64,000 bases of DNA from the sequence record OR770614.1; one strand, given 5' to 3'. Each line of letters starts with the position of its first letter. Within the stretch, counting starts at the first letter, position 1. The position numbers and the translations under genes were made by a program. Shown in pieces: positions 3,970 through 21,055 of this stretch. The notes below the pieces were generated by a model that ran no database searches, was not told the origin of the DNA, and saw only the letters and a program-made list of their open reading frames with translations.

Positions 3970-5517
3970 TTATCGTTTTAATAATTTAGCTAAATCTTTA
4001 GAATCAATGTCACCTTTTTTACTATCACTGCTTACTTTCAAAGCACCTAATTTATTTTGTTTTATAATTTCAAATTTACGATGTTCTGGAAGATATTTGT
4101 AAACCAATTCTCTAGCTTCATCAATTACGATAAATTCTAATAAGAAGAATTCTTTATAAACTTTATCTACAGCACGTCTATCATTTAATAAATCAACGCC
4201 AGTTTTACGTTTAACTTCTTGAGTTTCATCAATGCTAATCATTAAAGCTGTTGTAGGAATATAATTTCCGGATTTAGATCTAGTAATACTACCAGCTCTA
4301 TCTACAGTATAAATAGAATTTAATTTATTCCAAATAGCACCTGTACGTCCTTTTTTAGAATCTCTAGCAATTTTCTTAGTTCTTTCAGTATCTAATAATA
4401 AATCTCTAAATAATCTTAATTCACCTGTAGTAAATTTAACTAATTTAGTTACAAGATTAGATTTTCTAGATTTATCAGATAAATAGAATACTACATCTTC
4501 TGTTTTAACAGGATGTACTACAGTTTTTACACCAAATTTAACTGGTTTACTAGGATGATTAATTCCTGAAACTGGTTCACCTTTAGAATCTGTAATTAAG
4601 AAAGTAACATTCGTATTAACCATAGTTGGTATAGATGAATTTAATTTATCTTTTTGAATTGTAGTAGTAGTTCCATAATTATCATATTGATTCGTTTGTA
4701 TATCAGGTTTTACTCCTATAATATTTTTAATATATGAACTAAATGCTTCAGCAATTTCCATAGAACCATATAAGAATTTCATACCATTATCAGATAAAGT
4801 TCCTTCATTACTTGATGTTTTCAAGATATCATATAGTGATCTTGAATTGTCTTCTCCACCTCTATATTTAACCTCTTTCAAATTATTAAATAAGAATTCC
4901 AGTTGTTCACCGTTAGAATTCGGTTTAATTATATATACTGTTGCAGTATAAGTATCCTTAGTATCAGGATTATTAGCCTTTAAGAATTCTTTAACGTCAA
5001 ATTCAATATAACCTTTAATCTCTCTTGAATCCTCAAAATCAATTGTTTCTTCATTTAATAAATCCATTTCTTCTTTAGTAATTGACATATCATTAATTGA
5101 AGTTTTATTAAATTTTTCGTCTGGTGACTCAGTTAAATAATCATTAACACGTTTAATATCTTGCTTAGTACTTTCATTAAAATTAATATTTTGATGTAAG
5201 TCTCCCATAAATGAATTTGGATCTTTTGGATTATATTCTTGAATTGGAGTATTTGTTAAAATATATTCAAATTCATATGCTCTTTCTAATTCTAATTGAT
5301 TTCTCATTAATTCCACAGTATCATTATCTAAAGCATCAGAAGTCACTAATGGAAATTGTAAAATAAAATCTCCAGCTTTTCCTCTTAGTGTTCTATCGAA
5401 TGGTCTTTTACGTCTACTGTTATTTTTATAGTTATTTTTTACATTACCTGTAGTGGAATCCTTAAGTAAATCAATAACATCTGAAAGTATATTTACTTTT
5501 TTAACCAAAACTTTCAC
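3970..5517 (-). CDS. Hypothetical, probably virion structural protein
   Basis: 515 aa, GTG start with SD; late-type promoter at 5548-5559. Confidence 0.55.
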   Translation of the reverse strand: MKVLVKKVNILSDVIDLLKDSTTGNVKNNYKNNSRRKRPFDRTLRGKAGDFILQFPLVTSDALDNDTVELMRNQLELERAYEFEYILTNTPIQEYNPKDPNSFMGDLHQNINFNESTKQDIKRVNDYLTESPDEKFNKTSINDMSITKEEMDLLNEETIDFEDSREIKGYIEFDVKEFLKANNPDTKDTYTATVYIIKPNSNGEQLEFLFNNLKEVKYRGGEDNSRSLYDILKTSSNEGTLSDNGMKFLYGSMEIAEAFSSYIKNIIGVKPDIQTNQYDNYGTTTTIQKDKLNSSIPTMVNTNVTFLITDSKGEPVSGINHPSKPVKFGVKTVVHPVKTEDVVFYLSDKSRKSNLVTKLVKFTTGELRLFRDLLLDTERTKKIARDSKKGRTGAIWNKLNSIYTVDRAGSITRSKSGNYIPTTALMISIDETQEVKRKTGVDLLNDRRAVDKVYKEFFLLEFIVIDEARELVYKYLPEHRKFEIIKQNKLGALKVSSDSKKGDIDSKDLAKLLKR

Positions 5518-5605
5518 TGCCTTTCCTTATTTTTATTAAGATTTTTATAAAATTATGTTTGATGATGATTTTTAGTAAAAAAAGTAAAAAAAAAAATAAT
5601 CATCA

Positions 5606-5629
5606 TCGATCTCTAATTAAAGAGATCGA
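5606..5629 (-). terminator. Intrinsic terminator
   Basis: TCGATCTCT-AATTAA-AGAGATCGA hairpin with a downstream U-tract on the minus strand. Confidence 0.75.
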
Positions 5630-5812
5630 CAATGATTATCATAATATGAAATGAGTTGTTTTTTAAGTACTGTTATATTTAAGAAGGTTATCGCTTTAGG
5701 CGTTCGCCTGCCATATACTAGAAGCGATAAAATACGTATATGACTACTTTCCTGTTTTCCGATACAGTTCCGTTCATTAAATTTATTTCTATTTTTATTA
5801 ATTACTGAGTTT

Positions 5813-5956
5813 CTATATTTTTGGTGTATACAACACTTCATTTAAAATGAAATCATTTAAATTCATACACTTTTCTTTATTTCTTTTGCCATTATCTTGA
5901 TATATATTTTCTTTTTTATAATTTTCTTCCTTCTTTATTATTTCTTCTAATGTCAT
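5813..5956 (-). CDS. Small 47-aa ORF (MTLEEIIKKEENYKKENIYQDNGKRNKEKCMNLNDFILNEVLYTPKI), not in ORF track
   Basis: ATG 5956 to TAG 5813, preceded by SD-like AGGGGAA. Confidence 0.45.
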   Translation of the reverse strand: MTLEEIIKKEENYKKENIYQDNGKRNKEKCMNLNDFILNEVLYTPKI

Positions 5957-6327
5957 TTATTTTTATTCCCCTATACGAGCAGCATATCTCTTACGCTATC
6001 TTATAAATATGTGTAGACTATATTAATCTTATAATAAGATCAATACACCCAAATATAACAGTACGACTTTTTGATTTTAATTAATAATCTTTTTTATTTA
6101 ACTCATTTTGTCTACAATTAGCATTTATTTCCTATTCGATAACTGGGAGGTCCCAGACCTTCTGCTCTTTAATTATAAGGGTGAATTAAAGAGTCAGGCA
6201 TATTTATAGACTAGTTATAAGAGCGAAGAAAGATGACATTCTCTCTTCCATTATTATAATATAAATTTAAAAATTAAATTAAAATAATAAATGTGCTTTA
6301 ACATGTACTTATTAAAATTTTAAGAAA

Positions 6328-7317
6328 ATGAATGGTGGTGAAGAAAGATTGGCTGAAGATGATAAAAGCTTAGAAACTTCTTTTAAGGAAGAACTTAAAA
6401 AAGAAGGTAATGTAAAAGAAATAGAATCCTTTAACCCTTATAGAATGAAGGATAAAAATTCAGAAATATTTAATAAAGGATTACCTTATATTTTCTTTAC
6501 TGCTCCTCGTTTAAATTTAGTAGATGGTAATATAAATAGAGATAGTTTCTTTTCATATCTTAAAAGTGTTAAACCAAAATTATTAGAAACTTTAAATTTT
6601 AGTAATTTAAATGCTATAAGTTCAGGTAAACCTTTTATTCCAATCCTTTCAAATAGATTTATGGGTATATCTATACCTGATACACAAACTACAATGAAAG
6701 AATTCCATGAAACATTCTATGGATATAAACAACACTTACCGGTAGGAACAGTTAACTCAATTGCCGGTGGAGAAATTGCTGTTGACTTTGAAGAAAATAA
6801 AAATATAGATATTATACATTTAATAAAAGCTTGGAGCGAATATATTGAAGGAGTTACTAGAGGTTACATGTATCCTTCAGATGATGCTAAAGATAAACGC
6901 TATATAGATTATACTAGTTCTATATATTATTTCTTATTAGATTTTGATGGTGAAACTGTATTACATTACTCTAAATACACAGGATGTTTTCCTATTAATG
7001 TACCGTATGATATATTCTCTCAAAATGTTGGTGAAGATGTAGACGTTCCACATGTATCAGTTAACTTTGCTTATTCGTATAAAGAAGATATGAATCCAGA
7101 TACTTTAGTTGATTTTAATACAGTATCAACAATGGGAAGTTCAGTTGCAAATGCTTCAGGTGCTTCTCCTATAAGAGCTAATATAAATGCAGTAACAATG
7201 GGTGTTAAACTTAAATACGATGAAATGTATCCTATTAATACAGGTAATCCTTATATTGCGATGGGATCAAGAAGTGAAGATGGATCACAAAATAAATATA
7301 GATTAAGATTTTTATAA
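6328..7317 (+). CDS. Tail-tube-fold baseplate/tail protein (T4 gp19/gp48/gp54-like, tentative)
   Basis: 329 aa; KYTGCFPINVP and V.F.YSY motifs typical of tube-fold proteins; directly upstream of the baseplate wedge; late promoter 6300-6311. Confidence 0.5.
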   Translation: MNGGEERLAEDDKSLETSFKEELKKEGNVKEIESFNPYRMKDKNSEIFNKGLPYIFFTAPRLNLVDGNINRDSFFSYLKSVKPKLLETLNFSNLNAISSGKPFIPILSNRFMGISIPDTQTTMKEFHETFYGYKQHLPVGTVNSIAGGEIAVDFEENKNIDIIHLIKAWSEYIEGVTRGYMYPSDDAKDKRYIDYTSSIYYFLLDFDGETVLHYSKYTGCFPINVPYDIFSQNVGEDVDVPHVSVNFAYSYKEDMNPDTLVDFNTVSTMGSSVANASGASPIRANINAVTMGVKLKYDEMYPINTGNPYIAMGSRSEDGSQNKYRLRFL

Positions 7318-7340
7318 GAAAGTGAGTTGAAATTAATAAA

Positions 7341-10331
7341 ATGGCTATAACACAGTATTTCTCTAACGAACAAGAGAAATTAGATTTTTTAAATAATGCT
7401 AAGATAGATACGGATAGTGTTATTAAAATAGGAAGTACTTCATATGATGTTAAAGAAAAATGGTTTAATATGGCTAGTAAATTCTTTGAAATTGATACTG
7501 AAAATACTCCTATTGATGATAATGAAAATGAAGAACTTATTAGTTTGCTTAAAGCAGGCTTATTTGGTTATATTAATGAAATTAATTCTCATGAAGTTAA
7601 AAATGCTATTTATCACAGAAATGTTTTGTATGATGAATTATTCTTAAATACAGCATCAATACCGATGTCAATTTATAACTTTGCTAAATTATATAACGTA
7701 CCTATTCAAATGGCTACTCCTGCTAATTTTAAAGTAGATTTAGTAGTTAGAAAAGAGGATATATTAAAACTTCCAACTAAAGAGATTATATCCACTAAAA
7801 CTATTGATAAGGAAAAATCTTTAAAAACATATGAAGCAACTATATCTAAAAAACAAGATTTCACTATAGGTAACTTTAAATATAGCTTACCTTATGATGT
7901 TTCTATTATATTAAAACAATATCCAGTTACTAAAGATGGTAAAGAATTAATTGATTATAAAATATCAGCTAATTATAATATAGATAACAACTTATTTAAA
8001 TTCTCATCTATACTAGACAATAATGTTAAAGTAACTAAAAATATTTCTAATGGAATAGATTATTTATTCTTTAGTCTAGATCTATATCAAATTGATAGAG
8101 TTGAAAAAGAATTTAATATTACAAGTAATGATATTGCAGAAAATATTTATCTAGATAGTAGTTATGAAGGTCAATTAGCCGGGTTTAATGTATTTTATGA
8201 ATATATGGGTGAAAGAATCCCTATGGAAACTTATTTCAATAATACATTTACTCCAGATACAGATAATCCTTTCTGTTATTATAATTTTAAAGAGGAAAAT
8301 AAATTAGAAATATCTTTCTCTAATATTGCTAATTCATTTAGACCTAAAGCAAATAGTAGAGTTATAATTGAAACTTTAACTACTAGAGGTGAACAAGGTA
8401 ACTTTAATTATAATGATACATTAAATGTATCATTAGAATCTGGAGTTAGTACATTTGAAAAAATACCTGTTACAGTATTACCTAAAGGAAATTCTGTTAA
8501 CGGTAGAAATAAACCTACAGTAAACTCAGAGAAAAGACGTATTATTAATAAAGCTATAACTAGAGATAATATTATTACAGATTTTGATATTAAAAATTAT
8601 TTTAATGAAGTTAATGATAGTAATAATATTAATAATTCATTTATTAATTTCGTTAAGAAACGTAATGATCTATATACACGTATGTATAATGCATTCTTAT
8701 TATTAAGAGATAGTGATAATAAGGTTATGCCTACAAACACTGCACCTTATTTAGATTTCCCTAAAGAATATTTTATTGGAAATACATCTCTAGGAAATGA
8801 AGAAGACGGTTATGTTATTCCAGAAAATAGTCTATTTAAATACGATCATGAAGAAAAAGAATATATCCATATACCTGATGGTTTAGATGATAAAGATGAA
8901 AAAGAAAAATTTGAAAAAGATAAGGATTCTTTATATTATGTAAATCCTTTCTTAATCAAGATTAATAAGTATCCTTTCTTATCTTCCAACTATTATAAAC
9001 TTCATGTAAATGATTTATTCTCAACTGAATATAAATACATTAATGATTTAATACCTAGTAATATAACTACAACTGATTTATATGTAGAAAAATTAAATGA
9101 TTTCAAAAATACATTAGAGTCAGATACATTTAAATTTAGTGTAGAAATTGGTATGGATACATCATTACAAGAAATGAAAGATTTATTAAGTGTTAGAGCA
9201 GTTCTATTATCTCAAGAAACTGGAGAGAAGTATGGTTACTTTGAATTAAAACCAGAAGAAAATATTGAATCTGAAAATAATATTATTGATGACAGTGATA
9301 GTAGTGTTGATAAATCTTCACTATATACAGGTATGATATCTACAAATAGATCTTTCCATGAAGGAAAACTAGCAATCACAGATTCATTATATGATTCAAA
9401 AGGTATTGTACAAGATAATGTATTTATAGATGAGAAATTTGTAGTCAAAATTGGAATTATGTATAAAGATGAAGATATGAGATATTTTAATGAATTAGAT
9501 TATTCTGATGAAATGAATTTCTTTAAAGATGCTTTTCCTAATCATGAAGATAATGAAATTAATGACTATACATTAGCTTGTTCTATGGAAACTTTTGAAG
9601 GAGTATCTATCTATAAAGATATGTCAAATGTAATGAATAGTACAATATCCATGGATGATTCTAAATGTAGAGTGGAATTAATACCAATGTTTTCATTAGG
9701 TTACTTTATGAATAATTATGAAGAAGTATATAAAGTATTAGATGGTTATAAAGGTATACTAGAAGATGCTATTCCTAGATTACAAAATAATACTAGTATA
9801 GATATGAAACTGTATAATACAAAAGGTCCTTCTAATAATTATTATTTAGATACTAAATTAAATGATGATAATGTAGAAAATAAATATATTTCTAGAACTG
9901 ATATATTACTAGATCTAAATATAACATTATATGCTCCAATTAATGATTTCTTAGATAAAGAAATTAAAAGATATATATCAGATTTTATTGAAGCATGTAA
10001 TGAAAATGGTATTATACCTATATCTAATTTAATAAGATTATTAGAACAAAATTTTGATATTATTAAATATATTGTATTTAATGGAATTTCAGGTAAATAT
10101 GCAGAGAAAGTTGATAATCACTATCAAAAACTTCTTAACACTAATTTAGGTTATAATGATCTAAATAAACAAGAAATTATCGAATATGTTCCAGAATATA
10201 TAAATATTAAAAAGAATCTTAGAGAAAATAAAGTAGAAATTGAAAATGAAGATAATTCAACAGGAACTACAGTTATAGATTTAGGATTAACTTATGATGA
10301 TGTTGTAAATGTTACTTATTCAGTTTCTTAA
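7341..10331 (+). CDS. Baseplate wedge subunit (T4 gp6/baseplate J-like)
   Basis: 996 aa; TLTTRGEQGN and NKAITRDNIITDFD motifs resemble gp6/J proteins; structural context. Confidence 0.6.
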   Translation: MAITQYFSNEQEKLDFLNNAKIDTDSVIKIGSTSYDVKEKWFNMASKFFEIDTENTPIDDNENEELISLLKAGLFGYINEINSHEVKNAIYHRNVLYDELFLNTASIPMSIYNFAKLYNVPIQMATPANFKVDLVVRKEDILKLPTKEIISTKTIDKEKSLKTYEATISKKQDFTIGNFKYSLPYDVSIILKQYPVTKDGKELIDYKISANYNIDNNLFKFSSILDNNVKVTKNISNGIDYLFFSLDLYQIDRVEKEFNITSNDIAENIYLDSSYEGQLAGFNVFYEYMGERIPMETYFNNTFTPDTDNPFCYYNFKEENKLEISFSNIANSFRPKANSRVIIETLTTRGEQGNFNYNDTLNVSLESGVSTFEKIPVTVLPKGNSVNGRNKPTVNSEKRRIINKAITRDNIITDFDIKNYFNEVNDSNNINNSFINFVKKRNDLYTRMYNAFLLLRDSDNKVMPTNTAPYLDFPKEYFIGNTSLGNEEDGYVIPENSLFKYDHEEKEYIHIPDGLDDKDEKEKFEKDKDSLYYVNPFLIKINKYPFLSSNYYKLHVNDLFSTEYKYINDLIPSNITTTDLYVEKLNDFKNTLESDTFKFSVEIGMDTSLQEMKDLLSVRAVLLSQETGEKYGYFELKPEENIESENNIIDDSDSSVDKSSLYTGMISTNRSFHEGKLAITDSLYDSKGIVQDNVFIDEKFVVKIGIMYKDEDMRYFNELDYSDEMNFFKDAFPNHEDNEINDYTLACSMETFEGVSIYKDMSNVMNSTISMDDSKCRVELIPMFSLGYFMNNYEEVYKVLDGYKGILEDAIPRLQNNTSIDMKLYNTKGPSNNYYLDTKLNDDNVENKYISRTDILLDLNITLYAPINDFLDKEIKRYISDFIEACNENGIIPISNLIRLLEQNFDIIKYIVFNGISGKYAEKVDNHYQKLLNTNLGYNDLNKQEIIEYVPEYINIKKNLRENKVEIENEDNSTGTTVIDLGLTYDDVVNVTYSVS

Positions 10332-18389: not shown

Positions 18390-18478
18390 ATCATATTCAT
18401 CTCCATATTATAATATTAAGATTATATTTTAATAATCTCAAATTTATAATATATATTTAAAACGTAAAATAAAAATAA

Positions 18479-18508
18479 TCCCAATATCTATTAAATTAGA
18501 TATTGGGA
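18479..18508 (-). terminator. Palindrome family member ending the tRNA/ncRNA transcript
   Basis: TCCCAATATCT-ATTAAATT-AGATATTGGGA with compensatory A-T change, U-rich tail on the minus strand. Confidence 0.75.
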
Positions 18509-18509
18509 A

Positions 18510-19026
18510 ATATGTATAAAGATAACCCTAACCTCTTCGACTAATTTTGGAATCAATCTGTAGGTTAGGGTTATAGTTACTTTTACGAGAAAAGTATAAA
18601 GTTGCTTTAATAATTTTTTATATCCCATAAAGCATAAGAAGGATTAAAGAAACCAATATATGCATGGAACATATTAGGAATCTTGTAGCGATTTAATAGT
18701 CTAGTTTTTCTTATATTAGGGACTAAGAAACTAGAAAACCTAAAAAAGTATTAAAGTCAGATATTTATCACAAATTAATGTAAAATAAGTCCTCTTTAAT
18801 ACTTCGATCTAATAACTAAACGTAAATTAGATCTAAGACTGTAATGATTGTTGTGATACATATATTTAATTTGGCAGATTAAATATATGTGCTATTTTTT
18901 TTACAACTAAAGATATGCCTTAACTTTAGTTGAATCTAATAAATTAAGTTTGGCATATTACTTAATTTATATTTTATTCATAGCAGGTCTGCAGCCAAGC
19001 TATAAGGATGATTAATCCTATAGGGT
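18510..19026 (-). ncRNA. Candidate large structured RNA (hairpin array with complementary loops)
   Basis: No ORF; about ten stems, e.g. 18522-18574, 18701-18734, 18746-18804, 18806-18833, 18858-18890, 18904-18932, 18939-18970, 18981-19002; lies downstream of the tRNAs. Confidence 0.6.
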
Positions 19027-19129
19027 TGTTCCTAATGAGATTCGAACTCATAACCTACAGATCCATAAATTATCCTATCCAGGTATAATTCATAAAATCC
19101 GTACACTCTGACCATTGAGCTATAGGAAC
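19027..19129 (-). ncRNA. tRNA-like RNA with anticodon loop replaced by a long hairpin
   Basis: Acceptor GTTCCTA/TAGGAAC, D arm GCTC-AATGGTCA-GAGT, T arm ATGAG-TTCGAAT-CTCAT; 38 nt between TACGG and CTGTA instead of 7. Confidence 0.8.
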
Positions 19130-19136
19130 ATAGAAA

Positions 19137-19208
19137 CTGCTCTAGTTTGATTCGAACAAACAACCTCTTGATTAACAGTCAAGCATTCTACCATTGAATT
19201 ATAGAGCA
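19137..19208 (-). tRNA. tRNA-Asn (GTT)
   Basis: Cloverleaf TGCTCTA/TAGAGCA, anticodon arm CTTGA-CTGTTAA-TCAAG, T loop TTCGAAT, discriminator G; CCA not encoded. Confidence 0.92.
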
Positions 19209-19223
19209 TTAATAAAAAAAAAT

Positions 19224-19256
19224 AAAAGAGTACATTTATCATCTATGCACTCTTTT
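19224..19256 (-). terminator. Terminator-like hairpin immediately upstream of tRNA-Asn
   Basis: AAAAGAGTGCAT/ATGTACTCTTTT stem (G-U pair on the minus strand) followed by a U-tract. Confidence 0.55.
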
Positions 19257-19457
19257 AAGTAAATAAATATATAATAATATCTATTCATTTTTAATTATAC
19301 GTAAGGAGGCGTATGGATTTCTATTTAAAACCATGACATATTAAAAATAGAAACAAGAAATCAAAGGAACATTTTTAAAGCAACAACAAATGACAAAGTA
19401 AGTTATAATAGAATTTAATCTATTATATTTTTTAGTTAAATCAAAAACTAAAAAAAA

Positions 19458-19494
19458 AAATCTATAATAATTTGACGAGGATCATTATAGATTT
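19458..19494 (-). terminator. Intrinsic terminator downstream of tRNA-like RNA 19562-19631
   Basis: AATCTATAAT/ATTATAGATT stem followed by a long U-tract on the minus strand. Confidence 0.7.
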
Positions 19495-19561
19495 ATACTA
19501 TATAGTTAATTAATATTTTTAAATAAAATTTTTTAATAAATAGGAATTTTAGACCAAAAAA

Positions 19562-19631
19562 AGCTTATCCGAGGGATCGAACCCCGGACACATGATGAAA
19601 ATCATTGCTCTACCAACTGAGCTAGATAAAC
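19562..19631 (-). ncRNA. tRNA-like RNA with a 4-nt anticodon loop (Phe-like scaffold)
   Basis: GTTTATC/GATAAGC acceptor, GCTC-AGTTGGTA-GAGC D arm, CGGGG-TTCGATC-CCTCG T arm, anticodon arm ATGAT-TTTC-ATCAT; own early-type promoter 19644-19658. Confidence 0.75.
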
Positions 19632-19678
19632 TTTCTTCATTATTATAATATATGTTTATATTTCACTATATTACGCTT

Positions 19679-21055
19679 TTAATAAATATAATCTTCGATA
19701 TCAATTTCATTTTGTTTAATTGTCATATCATGGAAAGACTTCATGGAGCTTGTTACAATTGCTTGAGCTACCTGATTGACTAATAAACCAATATTTTCAA
19801 TACCTAATTTGTAAGGTAATTCTCCTGCACATTTACTACAAATATCTTCACTCGCACAATACATAGGACTTCTGAAGTTCAATACTTTCTCAATATACTC
19901 ATCTACATTTTCAGGAGTTAATAATATTAATTGACCTTTTCTTCCTGAAGTATTTTCAAAATATCTATAAAGTAAAAGACTTGCATTATCTTTAGTTAAA
20001 GTTAATTTTAATGTATGTTTTGTTCTACAATCAGAACCTTGTTTATCTAATACAGTTGTTTGGAAAGCGGACATAAGTTTTTTAGCTTGATCATTTTATT
20101 ATCTATATTTTACTATAGATTAGACTATATCTTATGAATTTAATCATTTCTATATTTAGTCGTTGGACAACTTTATTAAGTTGATGCTAGTTAGTTTTAA
20201 CATTCTAGCAATTAATAGAATTTATTGTGAGCATCTAATTTACCCACCTTCTTGAGTACCTAAAGCACGTCCAGCTGAACCAGCTGTCATAATATCACCA
20301 AACATATATAATTCTTCTGGATCAATTCCATCAGCTAAAGAACTCTTAGCAATACGTATTTTACTAGGATCAGCAAAATTTTTATTTGCTCCACGAATAA
20401 GAGCTGTTAATTTAAAGTTATTTTCAAAACTACCTCTTGATTTACTATCATAAATATCAAGATCTGCTAAACCTTCTAATTCTTCCTTACTTAACTTAAT
20501 TAATTCTTCTTCAATAGCACTAATAGCATTCAATTCTTCACCAGGAGTATTTAATGCTTTACCGTATTTCTCTAGTAATTCTTCTTTCTTTTGTTTAACT
20601 TTATCTGGAGCAACCATCATTGTAGTTGTTAAGCTAGAATTAATAAATCCTGCTATAGAGAAACCAAGCCATTGAAGTTTATCAATATACATATTCATAT
20701 CTTTAGTTGTAATAACGTCATTAAGTAATAAACTAGATAGTTCAGATTGTAGATTTCCTACACCTGATCCTCCCATATCTTTATTCATATATCCTATAAT
20801 AGGTCCTATTTTATTGTCTAATATAAATTTATTAAATATATATCTTCCAACTGTTGTTCTTTCATCTTTACTATTATAAACTAAATCTTTTTTAAGTTTA
20901 AATCTATCGCTAGGGTTAAACATTGGTTGTGTATTTTGTCTAAATGCAAATAATTCTTTAAGTTTATCAAGAGTAATATCTTCTTTTTTTATACTTAATA
21001 AAGTTGATATTTCTTTCTCAGATAAATCTTTTTTATCATAAGTCATATTAACCAA
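19679..21055 (-). CDS. rpoC: RNA polymerase beta' C-terminal subunit (probably virion RNAP), spliced; exons 21055-20242 and 20091-19679, 408 aa
   Basis: Splicing gives ALGTQEGGYQAKKLMSAF (bridge helix/switch); RSPMYC..ICSKC Zn site; SMKSFH trigger loop; late promoter 21089-21100. Confidence 0.88.
20092..20241 (-). mobile_element. Group I intron, 150 nt, no ORF
   Basis: P1 GTGGGT/GCTCAC with U-G splice pair; P AATTGCTAG, Q CTAGCATC, R TCCAACGACTA, S AAGATATAGTCT; terminal G. Confidence 0.9.

Follow-up and report, generated by a model that had tools for sequence, protein, structure and literature searches.

Candidate structured early mRNA around a small gene of Staphylococcus jumbo phages

Our comparison of related phage sequences suggests that an elaborate and conserved structured RNA of ~650 nt surrounds a small open reading frame (ORF) in a Staphylococcus aureus jumbo phage of the AR9/PBS1 lineage, whose tested kilobase is identical to vB_StaM_PB50. 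The unit is self-contained and occupies 6249-5595 on the minus strand of the window (the whole 64,000-nucleotide stretch of DNA analysed here). As its best reading we propose, with our confidence evenly poised, a new structured mRNA that regulates the translation, or else the stability, of the small gene it carries. In the 5' to 3' direction it consists of an early promoter, a hairpin at the predicted +1, a leader of ~290 nt, the 47-codon ORF, a trailer of ~220 nt and a 20-bp terminator, giving a transcript of ~655 nt in the window phage and of ~510-660 nt across the family. It lies between divergent genes, amid the structural operons of a lytic phage, and cumulative GC skew turns near 6000-6300, the same place as the switch in transcription direction.

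We found the unit in all ten sequenced Staphylococcus jumbo phages of our collection and in five Logan assembly contigs, in every occurrence immediately 5' of the gene for a 515-aa virion protein. Together these provide 11 distinct sequence variants, our comparative set, which split into the window type (window, AH12, L013, L014, L016) and a second group (group 2) that includes MarsHill. The groups are far apart in sequence: a profile HMM built from group 2 only (nhmmer) misses the window unit, and a group-2-only covariance model ranks it first, yet with E = 0.16. Searches further afield, using the tail-tube-like protein as query (IMG/VR, JGI metagenomes) or a degenerate B-L1 DNA pattern (IMG/VR, JGI metagenomes, GTDB genomes), returned zero relatives and zero matches, respectively.

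Transcription signals and the small gene

The unit is framed by the following elements.

6250-6275, minus strand: early promoter of the virion RNA polymerase type, with core TATATTATAA at 6254-6263
5967-5975, minus strand: ribosome-binding site region UAUAGGGGA, complementary to the loop of hairpin H2
5813-5956, minus strand: small ORF of 47 codons, a CDS in the Machias annotation
5595-5640, minus strand: intrinsic terminator with a 20-bp stem and a 6-nt loop, followed by a T run

An earlier note on this DNA had proposed a minus-strand unit with a promoter of early type at one end and a terminator at the other, and our data bear this out. The promoter core fits the AR9 and MarsHill early-promoter consensus TATATTAT (bioRxiv 10.1101/2020.12.14.422802), and the motif occurs 11 times in the window, which exceeds every one of 100 shuffles. 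Since the mapped AR9 start sits 7 nt past the motif, transcription is predicted by analogy to start with the G at 6249, after TATATTATAAnnnn; differential RNA-seq of AR9 shows an early start at the equivalent spot, distinct from the late start that serves the virion gene downstream (PMC5312081 supplementary tables). The terminator, previously placed at 5606-5629, is stronger than described there, with its 20-bp stem (5640-5595) and T run; nine base pairs of the stem are changed on both sides in AH12, and the Machias record annotates a terminator here.

Homologous ORFs of 23-52 codons are present in all 11 variants and share the C-terminal motif [DE]-F-x-x-x-[EDH]-[ILV]-L. Among the four closest pairs, three have dN/dS values of 0.09-0.18, and the 47-codon ORF is, judged by sequence comparison, a genuine gene that appears to be under purifying selection; so the earlier suggestion of a new large non-coding RNA class does not apply to a unit that is not non-coding. 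The predicted product is a Lys/Glu-rich, hydrophilic protein for which a single soluble helix is modelled from the window sequence alone (residues 3-43, pLDDT 80), and it is without homologue outside its own cluster and without Pfam or PHROG family. An overlapping 74-codon ORF (5617-5841), whose N-terminal half is unconserved and which lacks a group 2 counterpart, was rejected as a gene.

The small ORF diverges far faster than the untranslated parts of the unit, and the segment between the arms of helix L2 is hypervariable. While ORF synonymous sites diverge by 14-68%, the untranslated parts do so by 2-15% (Fisher p 0.05 to 2e-9).

Conserved helices and what they argue against

Folding and comparison of the variants define these structural elements, listed from the 5' end of the RNA.

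6225-6249, minus strand: hairpin P1, beginning at the predicted +1
6199-6207, minus strand: 5' arm of helix A (AUAAAUAUG), partner 6003-6011
6165-6193, minus strand: hairpin H2 with a conserved C-rich apical loop at 6175-6183 (CACCCUUAU)
6157-6163, minus strand: purine box AGAAGGU, complementary to the pyrimidine box at 5682-5688
6143-6156, minus strand: G+C-rich hairpin CUGGG-ACCU-CCCAG, only in window-type relatives
6110-6116, minus strand: 5' arm of helix B (UGUAGAC), partner 6012-6018
6100-6108, minus strand: 5' arm of helix L1 (AAAUGAGUU), partner 5649-5657, ~450 nt apart
6048-6064, minus strand: 5' arm of helix L2 (14 bp perfect, 17 bp counting a G.U extension), partner 5667-5683
6019-6047, minus strand: local hairpin lying between L2 and B; AH12 has a shorter, perfect stem capped by a GAAA loop
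6003-6018, minus strand: contiguous 3' arms of helix B (6012-6018) and helix A (6003-6011)
5688-5770, minus strand: 3' domain of window-type relatives only, with hairpins Ha, Hb, Hd and Hc
5752-5767, minus strand: Ha, hairpin of the 3' domain
5736-5742/5712-5718, minus strand: Hb, five sequence variants
5723-5730/5688-5695, minus strand: Hd, four sequence variants
5699-5708, minus strand: Hc, tetraloop hairpin with loop GAAC, GAAA, GAGA or UUCG
5682-5688, minus strand: pyrimidine box ACCUUCU, anti-Shine-Dalgarno-like, abutting the L2 3' arm on its 5' side
5667-5683, minus strand: 3' arm of helix L2
5649-5657, minus strand: 3' arm of helix L1

For the window sequence taken by itself, no stem of at least 14 bp arose in any of 100 dinucleotide shuffles, and 4 stems reach 10 bp or more where 0.6 are expected. 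At 7-9 bp the numbers of stems are at chance level (37 observed vs 27 expected, 12 vs 8 and 5 vs 2). The 14-bp stem is the only one to exceed chance in the window sequence, and it is comparative data that decide the remaining helices. Folded as a whole, the unit lies below shuffled sequences in energy (window, z = -5.7; AH12, z = -7.3; 20 shuffles each).

All complementarities that the earlier note had listed are present, and the comparison of relatives that it called for reveals compensatory changes in each of the long-range helices A (5999-6011/6199-6210 in that note), B (6012-6018/6110-6116), L1 (5649-5657/6100-6108) and L2 (5667-5680/6051-6064). We scored covariation as pair counts with our own scripts, comparing native with chimeric arms; because the variants belong to few lineages, independent compensatory events are fewer than the following cell counts imply. 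Helix L2 occurs in nine sequence variants with 143/143 cells paired (native 13 vs chimeric 10.5), its native total is reached by 5/20000 arm permutations, and RNAalifold recovers it independently. For L1 there are six variants with 79/80 cells paired (native 8 vs chimeric 4.5 of 8 positions), for A five with 98/99 cells paired (native 9 vs chimeric 6.0 of 9 positions) and for B seven, among them UGUGAAC/GUUCACA and AGUAGAA/UUCUACU (native 7 vs chimeric 4.7). A first set of seven variants had 272/273 canonical cells and 8 pairs changed on both sides; its observed pairing was reached by none of 5000 column shuffles, and sliding the partner arm lowered pairing to 28-57%. Consistent with this, RNAalifold run on five divergent sequences recovered P1, L2, the G+C-rich hairpin, Hb and Hc, with 18 pairs changed on both sides.

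The local hairpins noticed before also stand. The stem of H2 covaries and its loop is C-rich in 11/11 variants; the G+C-rich hairpin is kept in all five variants of the window's type (in AH12, L013, L014 and L016 with G-C to G.U changes) and is missing from group 2. At the predicted +1 every variant carries a 9-13-bp hairpin of unrelated sequence, extended in the stem in L013 and L014. A pairing formerly drawn over the start codon of the small ORF (5949-5956/6233-6240), however, finds no counterpart in group 2, whose 5' hairpin carries a GAAA loop. The proposed switch at 5682-5695 survives in part: local pairing 5688-5695/5723-5730 (Hd) covaries (30/30 cells paired, native 6 vs chimeric 2.4 of 6) and complementarity between the boxes (5682-5688/6157-6163) is conserved, but the further partner 6137-6143, pairing with 5687-5693, is missing in L013, L014 and L016. 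As judged by reading the sequences rather than by formal count, the two boxes are complementary in every variant, with both sides changing. Hb and Hd cross each other, which makes the 3' domain a predicted H-type pseudoknot.

Could the arms instead be a passive feature of the DNA, such as terminal repeats of a mobile cassette, an origin or a packaging signal, with the RNA fold incidental? The hypervariable ORF segment between the L2 arms does resemble an exchanged cassette, and the turn in GC skew lies here. Yet the pair types (291 Watson-Crick, 25 G.U, 1 A.C) indicate that the fold belongs to the minus-strand RNA, as a DNA repeat would lack such a bias; moreover, covariation extends over many helices and hairpins, nested as well as crossing, and so beyond any single repeat pair, promoter and terminator are the unit's own, and it is present once per genome stretch examined, without a paralogue in the window by nhmmer. 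To our minds a DNA-level explanation, already disfavoured, is therefore highly improbable.

Models for the role of the fold

Helices A and B close a 5' domain, and L1 and L2 join leader to trailer and enclose ribosome-binding site and ORF, an arrangement kept by compensatory change in the 11 sequence variants. Opinion among us is balanced on whether the unit is a monocistronic early transcript in which the message for a small helical protein that evolves fast is combined with a large and precise fold acting in cis. If so, protection against host RNases may come from the hairpin at the 5' end, from the clamp between 5' and 3' parts and from the terminator. Both the H2 loop and the CUUCU box next to L2 are pyrimidine elements, and in competition they would gate ribosome entry to the G-rich ribosome-binding site, with the CUUCU box alternatively captured by the purine box downstream of H2; the small protein might then be made in one conformation only or following a processing step.

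Pairing between H2 loop and ribosome-binding site is predicted to comprise 5-8 bp at -8.3 to -9.7 kcal/mol (seven variants computed). [quoted passage not shown] Nested folding in the window's group yields a site that is 0.63 unpaired in the full RNA vs 0.2-0.4 when truncated, so that masking by the trailer is not predicted there by this type of model; for these phages gating would rest on loop-to-linear pairings, which are outside what folding programs model.

The same exposed C-rich H2 loop could also work in trans, and we consider it possible, if rather unlikely, that the unit is a dual-function riboregulator that encodes a protein and, besides, pairs with G-rich ribosome-binding sites in mRNAs of the host or the phage (in the window's lineage with the CCUCC-containing hairpin too), reprogramming translation early in infection. 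This would agree with a C-rich loop on a covarying stem in 11/11 variants, with RNA parts much better conserved than the peptide and with the early promoter; C-rich loops are a recognised seed of S. aureus regulatory RNAs, namely RNAIII and the Rsa RNAs (PMC3053349). The only TATAGGGG within the 64-kb window, however, is the ribosome-binding site of the unit itself, which points to a partner in cis, and there is no Rfam relationship to RNAIII.

Helices A and B cross L1 and L2, and this implies either one large pseudoknot or alternation between two folds. The two are near-equal in predicted energy in group 2 (-111.1 vs -109.1 and -107.3 vs -108.4 kcal/mol), and when the fold is predicted for the nascent 5' part, A forms (plus B in group 2). 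A counter-point to the cis model is that the fold is far more elaborate and better conserved than the protein it would regulate, and a function of the RNA itself fits such a fold at least as well as cis regulation does. Hence we also entertain, with clear reservations, a large pseudoknotted phage RNA of a new class, which would switch between A/B and L1/L2 folds and whose fold would have its own function; the 3' pseudoknot domain could then sense a cellular or infection signal, or the C-rich loop act in trans, with the peptide as one output.

Taken further, the RNA might be autonomous (scaffold, sponge, sensor or catalyst), comparable to ROOL, GOLLD and OLE, with the ORF as a tolerated or accessory passenger. 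Its length of 510-660 nt, the crossing helices, a 3' pseudoknot whose caps are GNRA or UUCG and a fold kept while ORF length ranges over 23-52 codons would all suit this idea, as would the association of ROOL and GOLLD with phages (PMC12286853). We nonetheless judge it quite unlikely: every variant keeps the ORF with its ribosome-binding site and purifying selection, ROOL, GOLLD and OLE models give no match, and an invariant core typical of ribozymes is not recognised.

Relation to known RNAs and to the AR9 locus

That the unit matches no recognised family was confirmed with the covariance models of Rfam 15, among them RNAIII, ROOL, GOLLD, OLE, group I/II introns, riboswitches and small ribozymes: nothing relevant emerged at E up to 10 in positions 4500-7500 of the window, and the units of L013, L014, L016 and L020 gave no match with an E of 1 or less. 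In general terms, though, several RNAs invite comparison with a structured mRNA of the kind we favour. RNAIII of S. aureus has a small ORF, 14 hairpins, long-range helices that close domains and C-rich loops (PMC3053349); the unit is alike in size class, embedded small ORF, domain-closing long-range helices, C-rich loops and host genus. Unlike RNAIII it is phage-encoded from a phage early promoter, has crossing helices and shows no sequence or covariance-model similarity, and whereas RNAIII encodes delta-haemolysin, the product of the unit's ORF is hydrophilic, 23-52 aa long and unrelated.

Leader-trailer complementarity, as in the unit (L1 79/80 and L2 143/143 cells paired), is known from Bacillus subtilis hbs mRNA with its 14-bp duplex (PMC5737220) and from S. 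aureus icaR, where translation is under the control of a pyrimidine-rich motif in the 3' UTR, which pairs with the ribosome-binding region (PMC3868564). The hbs duplex equals L2 in length, and both belong to monocistronic Firmicutes mRNAs; in group 2, not in the window's group, the pyrimidine box of the unit is predicted to mask the ribosome-binding site as the icaR motif does. Different from both, the unit has two long-range helices, a crossing A/B pair and a leader of 290 nt, to which one lineage adds a 3' domain with a pseudoknot.

In hok-type mRNAs of type I toxin-antitoxin systems a 3' element pairs with the 5' region, resulting in fold-back inhibition. The unit is similar in being a compact, presumably stable small-ORF mRNA with putative translational control and alternative folds during and after transcription. 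Its peptide, however, is a predicted Lys/Glu-rich soluble helix and not the small hydrophobic membrane toxin of hok or fst systems, and the unit sits between structural operons of a lytic phage. An antisense RNA gene overlapping the unit was not found, the sole strong promoter-like site on the plus strand (6233-6260) pointing away, and no conserved opposite-strand unit was seen. In peptide and antisense gene alike, the unit does not resemble a type I system. ROOL, GOLLD and OLE share with the unit a length of several hundred nt, many conserved helices and an association with Firmicutes phages (PMC12286853), but they are non-coding and their Rfam models do not match, whereas the unit bears a conserved and selected ORF. 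As for riboswitches, the unit has two crossing sets of covarying helices and a conserved 3' pseudoknot domain, in which no known aptamer or ligand was recognised.

Other candidates were discarded. A group I or II intron is contradicted by the lack of exons, by the unit's own promoter and terminator, by its place between divergent genes and by the lack of an Rfam intron match; a retron RNA by the absence of a neighbouring reverse transcriptase; type III toxin-antitoxin repeats by the absence of repeats; and a tmRNA or tRNA by an ARAGORN search that was empty across the unit. A link to the uracil-DNA glycosylase inhibitor missing from these phages (PMC10303552) was dismissed as well, given that AR9 has Ugi plus an early RNA at this locus and that the peptide is not acidic.

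This AR9 counterpart, an early transcript upstream of g214, takes the equal genomic position between the genes for the tail-tube-like and a minor virion protein, and it is alike in early promoter type, own terminator and a long-range helix around ribosome-binding site and mini-ORF. It differs in length (~260 nt) and in its hydrophobic 14-15-codon ORF, which is unrelated to the Staphylococcus ORF, and nhmmer detects no sequence similarity between the unit and the AR9, BpSp or LPJP1 loci. The AR9 authors treated the region as a 340-nt 5' UTR of g214 (PMC5312081). We think that this long 5' UTR is probably an independent early RNA. On the more speculative reading of a fold with its own function, a functional analogue at this locus in Bacillus and Listeria relatives would make the unit an early device common to the whole lineage of uracil-DNA jumbo phages.

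The early genes of AR9/PBS1-lineage jumbo phages are transcribed by a virion RNA polymerase that is injected, and almost none of their products, to our knowledge, are understood. Our analysis defines a conserved early RNA in which constraint on the fold appears stronger than on the encoded protein. Few large structured RNAs are listed for Firmicute phages, and the unit is a further candidate. Crossing long-range helices are uncommon in bacterial mRNAs, and small, rapidly evolving early phage proteins usually serve host takeover or counter-defence. The unit may provide a concrete model for how a phage would time or limit the output of such a protein. Since the phages at issue, which infect S. 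aureus, are being considered for therapy, their early regulatory elements are of practical interest as well.

The early unit, its neighbours and its relatives

The unit sits in an 810-bp spacer separating two divergent late genes, within a stretch (window 5400-6400) that is 100% identical in vB_StaM_PB50, 99.6% in Machias and 84.6% in AH12, jumbo phages of ~270 kb and 25% G+C from the AR9/PBS1 lineage. Its early-type promoter and terminator, both anticipated in the earlier note, are present at its ends. Motifs of the promoter type, for which a consensus (TATATTAT) has been published for AR9 and MarsHill (bioRxiv 10.1101/2020.12.14.422802), occur 11 times in the window, above every one of 100 shuffles, and the start is predicted by analogy with the mapped AR9 site, which lies 7 nt past the motif (differential RNA-seq, PMC5312081 supplementary tables).

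Features of the unit and its flanks (window positions)
3970-5517, minus: gene for the 515-aa virion protein
5548-5559, minus: late-promoter motif AACA(N6)TA upstream of the 515-aa gene, just past the unit terminator (read from sequence, with the consensus as quoted in the bioRxiv paper above)
5640-5595, minus: terminator, 20-bp stem and T run
~220 nt, minus: trailer
5956-5813, minus: 47-codon ORF, annotated as CDS in Machias
5967-5971, minus: G-rich ribosome-binding site
~290 nt, minus: leader
6249, minus: predicted start G
6254-6263, minus: early promoter motif TATATTATAA, from motif search
~6296-6307, plus: late-promoter motif AACA(N6)TW upstream of the tail-tube-like gene
6328-7317, plus: 329-aa gene, putative tail tube protein (Pfam PF23971, E = 8e-14)

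With late-promoter motifs on both sides, the early unit is thus wedged between two late promoters. The 329-aa gene is the adjoining 'virion structural protein' with the PF23971 match; a sigma-70-like near-consensus promoter directed at it (plus strand 6233-6260; ATGACA, 16 nt, TATAAT; 11/12 matches) overlaps the opposite-strand early promoter and hairpin P1. The 515-aa gene has a hypervariable central patch (window 4680-5035; L003:1410-1935) whose nucleotide identity is 30-60%, against 88-100% on either side of it, a pattern seen in PB50 against AH12 and in MarsHill against S6.

Read from its 5' end, the unit comprises P1 at +1, the 5' arm of helix A, hairpin H2 with its C-rich loop, a purine box, a hairpin (CUGGG-ACCU-CCCAG) confined to the window's lineage, the 5' arms of helices B and L1, a variable hairpin, the 5' arm of helix L2 and a further leader hairpin, after which the 3' arms of B and A follow each other without a gap and precede the ribosome-binding site and ORF. 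3' of the ORF, again in the window's lineage only, lies a domain where helices Hb and Hd cross as an H-type pseudoknot; hairpin Hc is capped by GAAC, GAAA, GAGA or UUCG, and the unit closes with a pyrimidine box, the 3' arms of L2 and L1 and the terminator. The window holds one copy. Elsewhere on its minus strand, 18390-19680 is a 1.3-kb stretch without genes that carries two early-type promoters (19643-19652, 18444-18453), tRNA-Asn (19137-19208), an unusual tRNA prediction whose anticodon has 2 nt (19561-19632) and, near 19030-19135, a tRNA-like sequence that contains an insert. One hairpin of this stretch (~18700-18735) has a loop, GUCCCUAAUAU, that resembles the H2 loop, and falls inside the second-best match of our covariance model (18672-18745).

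Every Staphylococcus jumbo phage of our collection has the unit, always on the same strand as the 515-aa gene homologue and directly upstream of it. Group 1 units (PB50, Machias, AH12) measure 653-663 nt, and group 2 units (MarsHill, Madawaska, SA1, S6, PALS_2, LY01, DC4) 510-535 nt, with additional small genes between unit and divergent gene. Identity between the groups is only ~40%, and nhmmer found no link between their units. Fetching contigs that encode the 515-aa protein, used as search query, yielded five further units, three strongly diverged ones of the window's type (L013, L014, L016), a diverged group 2 unit (L020) and one near DC4 (L015), so that 11 distinct unit sequences were compared. 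A 12-nt string, AAAUGACAUUAG, forms the small-ORF start in group 1 (window 5947-5959) and in group 2 (L003:2832-2844) lies within the variable leader hairpin, at the beginning of a 14-codon ORF; chance or a past rearrangement may account for the shared string.

Compensatory changes in the long-range helices

All complementarities listed in the earlier note exist, and whole-unit folding is better than that of shuffles (z = -5.7 for the window, -7.3 for AH12; 20 shuffles each). In a single-sequence chance test only the 14-bp stem exceeds shuffles; since stems of 7-9 bp are equally common there, which of the short ones were real could not be known from one sequence. Comparison of variants decides this. 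In a first set of seven variants, the 39 pairs of helices A, B, L1 and L2 were canonical in 272/273 cells; eight pairs had both sides changed, eight only one side, and 23 were invariant. Column shuffling matched this level of pairing in 0 of 5000 trials, and sliding the partner arm by 1-3 nt lowered pairing to 28-57%. In an expanded set, with four to nine sequence versions per helix, native arms pair essentially completely whereas chimeric arms do not.

Pairing of native and chimeric arms (manual anchor-based alignment and our own scripts rather than R-scape; variants fall into few lineages, so independent compensatory events are fewer than the cell counts)
Helix A: 5 versions; native 98/99 cells; chimeric mean 6.0/9 positions
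Helix B: 7 versions; native 71/77 cells (L014 row scored out of register, its true pairing being AGUGG/CCACU); chimeric mean 4.7/7
Helix L1: 6 versions; native 79/80 cells; chimeric mean 4.5/8
Helix L2: 9 versions; native 143/143 cells (total reached in 5/20000 permutations of 3' arms); chimeric mean 10.5/13
Helix Hd: 4 versions; native 30/30 cells; chimeric mean 2.4/6

L1, for instance, reads AAAUGAGUU/AACUCAUUU in the window, GAGUGAGUU/AACUCACUC in group 2, GUAUUCAUU/AAUGAAUAU in L016 and UAAGGUUU/AAACCUUA in L014, and versions of B include UGUAGAC/GUCUACA, UGUGAAC/GUUCACA and AGUAGAA/UUCUACU. RNAalifold, which is independent of the manual alignment, agrees with this picture: both sides changed in 13 pairs among window, Machias and AH12 and in 18 among five diverged window-type relatives, where P1, the G+C hairpin, L2, Ha, Hb and Hc were recovered, and group 2 alone gave an unchanged global architecture. 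Over all distinct variants there are 291 Watson-Crick, 25 G.U, one A.C and one other pair, and this excess of G.U over A.C identifies the fold as that of the minus-strand RNA, neither of duplex DNA nor of the opposite transcript.

The earlier proposal of a structured RNA around a small ORF is borne out as a conserved, strand-specific multi-helix fold enclosing a conserved small gene, yet not all its contacts survive. The suggested pairing of the P1 loop with the start codon (5949-5956/6233-6240) has no counterpart in group 2, whose P1 loop is GAAA, and that of UUAUCG (6137-6143) with CGAUAA is missing in L013, L014 and L016. The local partner proposed for segment 5682-5695, that is Hd, does covary, and the purine-box/pyrimidine-box complementarity recurs in every variant by reading of the sequences without a formal count (window AGAAGGU/ACCUUCU, L016 GGAAGUU/AACUUCU, L013 GGAGAU/AUCUUC, group 2 GGAAGU/ACUUCU).

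A and B cross L1 and L2, so the RNA would form either a pseudoknot or a switch. Nested folding, which handles neither pseudoknots nor loop-to-linear contacts, places the alternatives close in energy in group 2 (MarsHill -111.1 vs -109.1 kcal/mol; S6 -107.3 vs -108.4) and favours L1/L2 in the window (-145.5 vs -132.9 kcal/mol). In the predicted nascent 5' fold helix A forms (A and B in group 2). The B-L1 spacing of 1 to ~25 nt among variants makes one pseudoknotted fold sterically possible.

The small ORF and its proposed gating

An ORF of 23-52 codons lies at the equivalent place in all variants, and the C-terminal core is common to them all (for example DFILNEVLY, NFILDELLY, QFILLDEL, NFINEHILSNY, DFRNKEILSNY or EFKNKELLSCY). 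dN/dS is 0.09-0.18 in three of the four closest pairs and 0.69 in the fourth (MarsHill-SA1); among deeper pairs only MarsHill-S6 exceeds 1 (1.49). Judged by its sequence, the small ORF is a gene. The window's product is predicted as a single helix (residues 3-43, pLDDT 80), with no homologue beyond its own cluster and no Pfam or PHROG family. No other part of the unit is as poorly conserved as the ORF: between MarsHill and S6, leader and trailer are 94-98% and the ORF 46-72% identical, and untranslated positions diverge by 2-15% against 14-68% at ORF synonymous sites (Fisher p 0.05 to 2e-9), a contrast that could in part stem from mosaic exchange of that segment. As the adjoining virion gene is 88-100% identical outside its variable patch, the untranslated parts equal conserved coding sequence in constraint. 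A 74-codon ORF (5617-5841, minus), which overlaps the small-ORF end together with the 3' RNA domain, is probably not a gene: AH12 keeps it open only through conservation of that domain, the N-terminal half of the ORF is unconserved, and group 2 has no counterpart.

Between the H2 loop and the ribosome-binding region there is complementarity of 5-8 bp (-8.3 to -9.7 kcal/mol across the seven variants for which it was computed), and paired changes can be read in several lineages (CCCUUAUA with UAUAGGGG, UCCCUU with AAGGGA, CCCUA with UAGGG), a co-change that is suggestive only and in most of group 2 does not extend past the G run. The window contains TATAGGGG a single time, at the ribosome-binding site. 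In group 2 this site is predicted to be unpaired at 0.15-0.33 in the full RNA and 0.83-0.88 without the trailer (MarsHill 0.49), with the start codon inside a predicted local hairpin; for the window's group nested folding predicts no trailer masking of the site. To our minds, the fold may act in cis, where it would stabilise the message and gate translation of the small protein, possibly by a mechanism in which one ribosome-binding site, two purine boxes and two pyrimidine elements compete for one another.

Counterparts and known systems

At the equivalent locus, Bacillus and Listeria phages carry a shorter early RNA (AR9, L008:3622-3882; BpSp, L012:2629-2873; LPJP1, L007:3480-3930; contig L018:2650-2915). 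In AR9 its early start site (181724) was listed as a '340-nt 5' UTR' of g214, a gene that is expressed late and has a separate late start site (182012) past the terminator (PMC5312081 and its supplementary tables). In the AR9 and BpSp units (~260 nt) a long-range helix encloses a ribosome-binding site and an ORF of 14-15 codons (MFKALRTVLSIIGLQ, MFKLVRIIVSLING), with both-side changes in 14 pairs; by reading, the loop of a hairpin and the segment that separates terminator stem from U run covary (AR9 AACCACCU/AGGUGGUU, BpSp AACCGCCUU/AAGGCGGUU). The units of Listeria phage LPJP1 and contig L018 are comparable, likewise with a long-range helix, and across the four loci the mini-ORFs are hydrophobic and 12-24 codons long (also MKALIGLFIKDY, MKIAVLIVTVCIDILLKEDKRRPF). 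Position and design are common to these and the Staphylococcus unit; nhmmer detected no sequence similarity between the latter and the AR9, BpSp and LPJP1 loci.

The earlier note recognised no known family, and a covariance-model search indeed gave no Rfam family for window 4500-7500 or the L013, L014, L016 and L020 units. Among the closest working analogies is hok-type fold-back inhibition. Others are the 5'/3'-UTR interactions of icaR and hbs (PMC3868564; PMC5737220) and RNAIII, in which a small ORF occurs together with C-rich loops and with long-range helices that close off domains (PMC3053349). The unit belongs to none of these types. Beyond gating in cis, the RNA may act in trans or have an autonomous function, readings that gain plausibility from a fold which exceeds the enclosed peptide in both elaboration and conservation.
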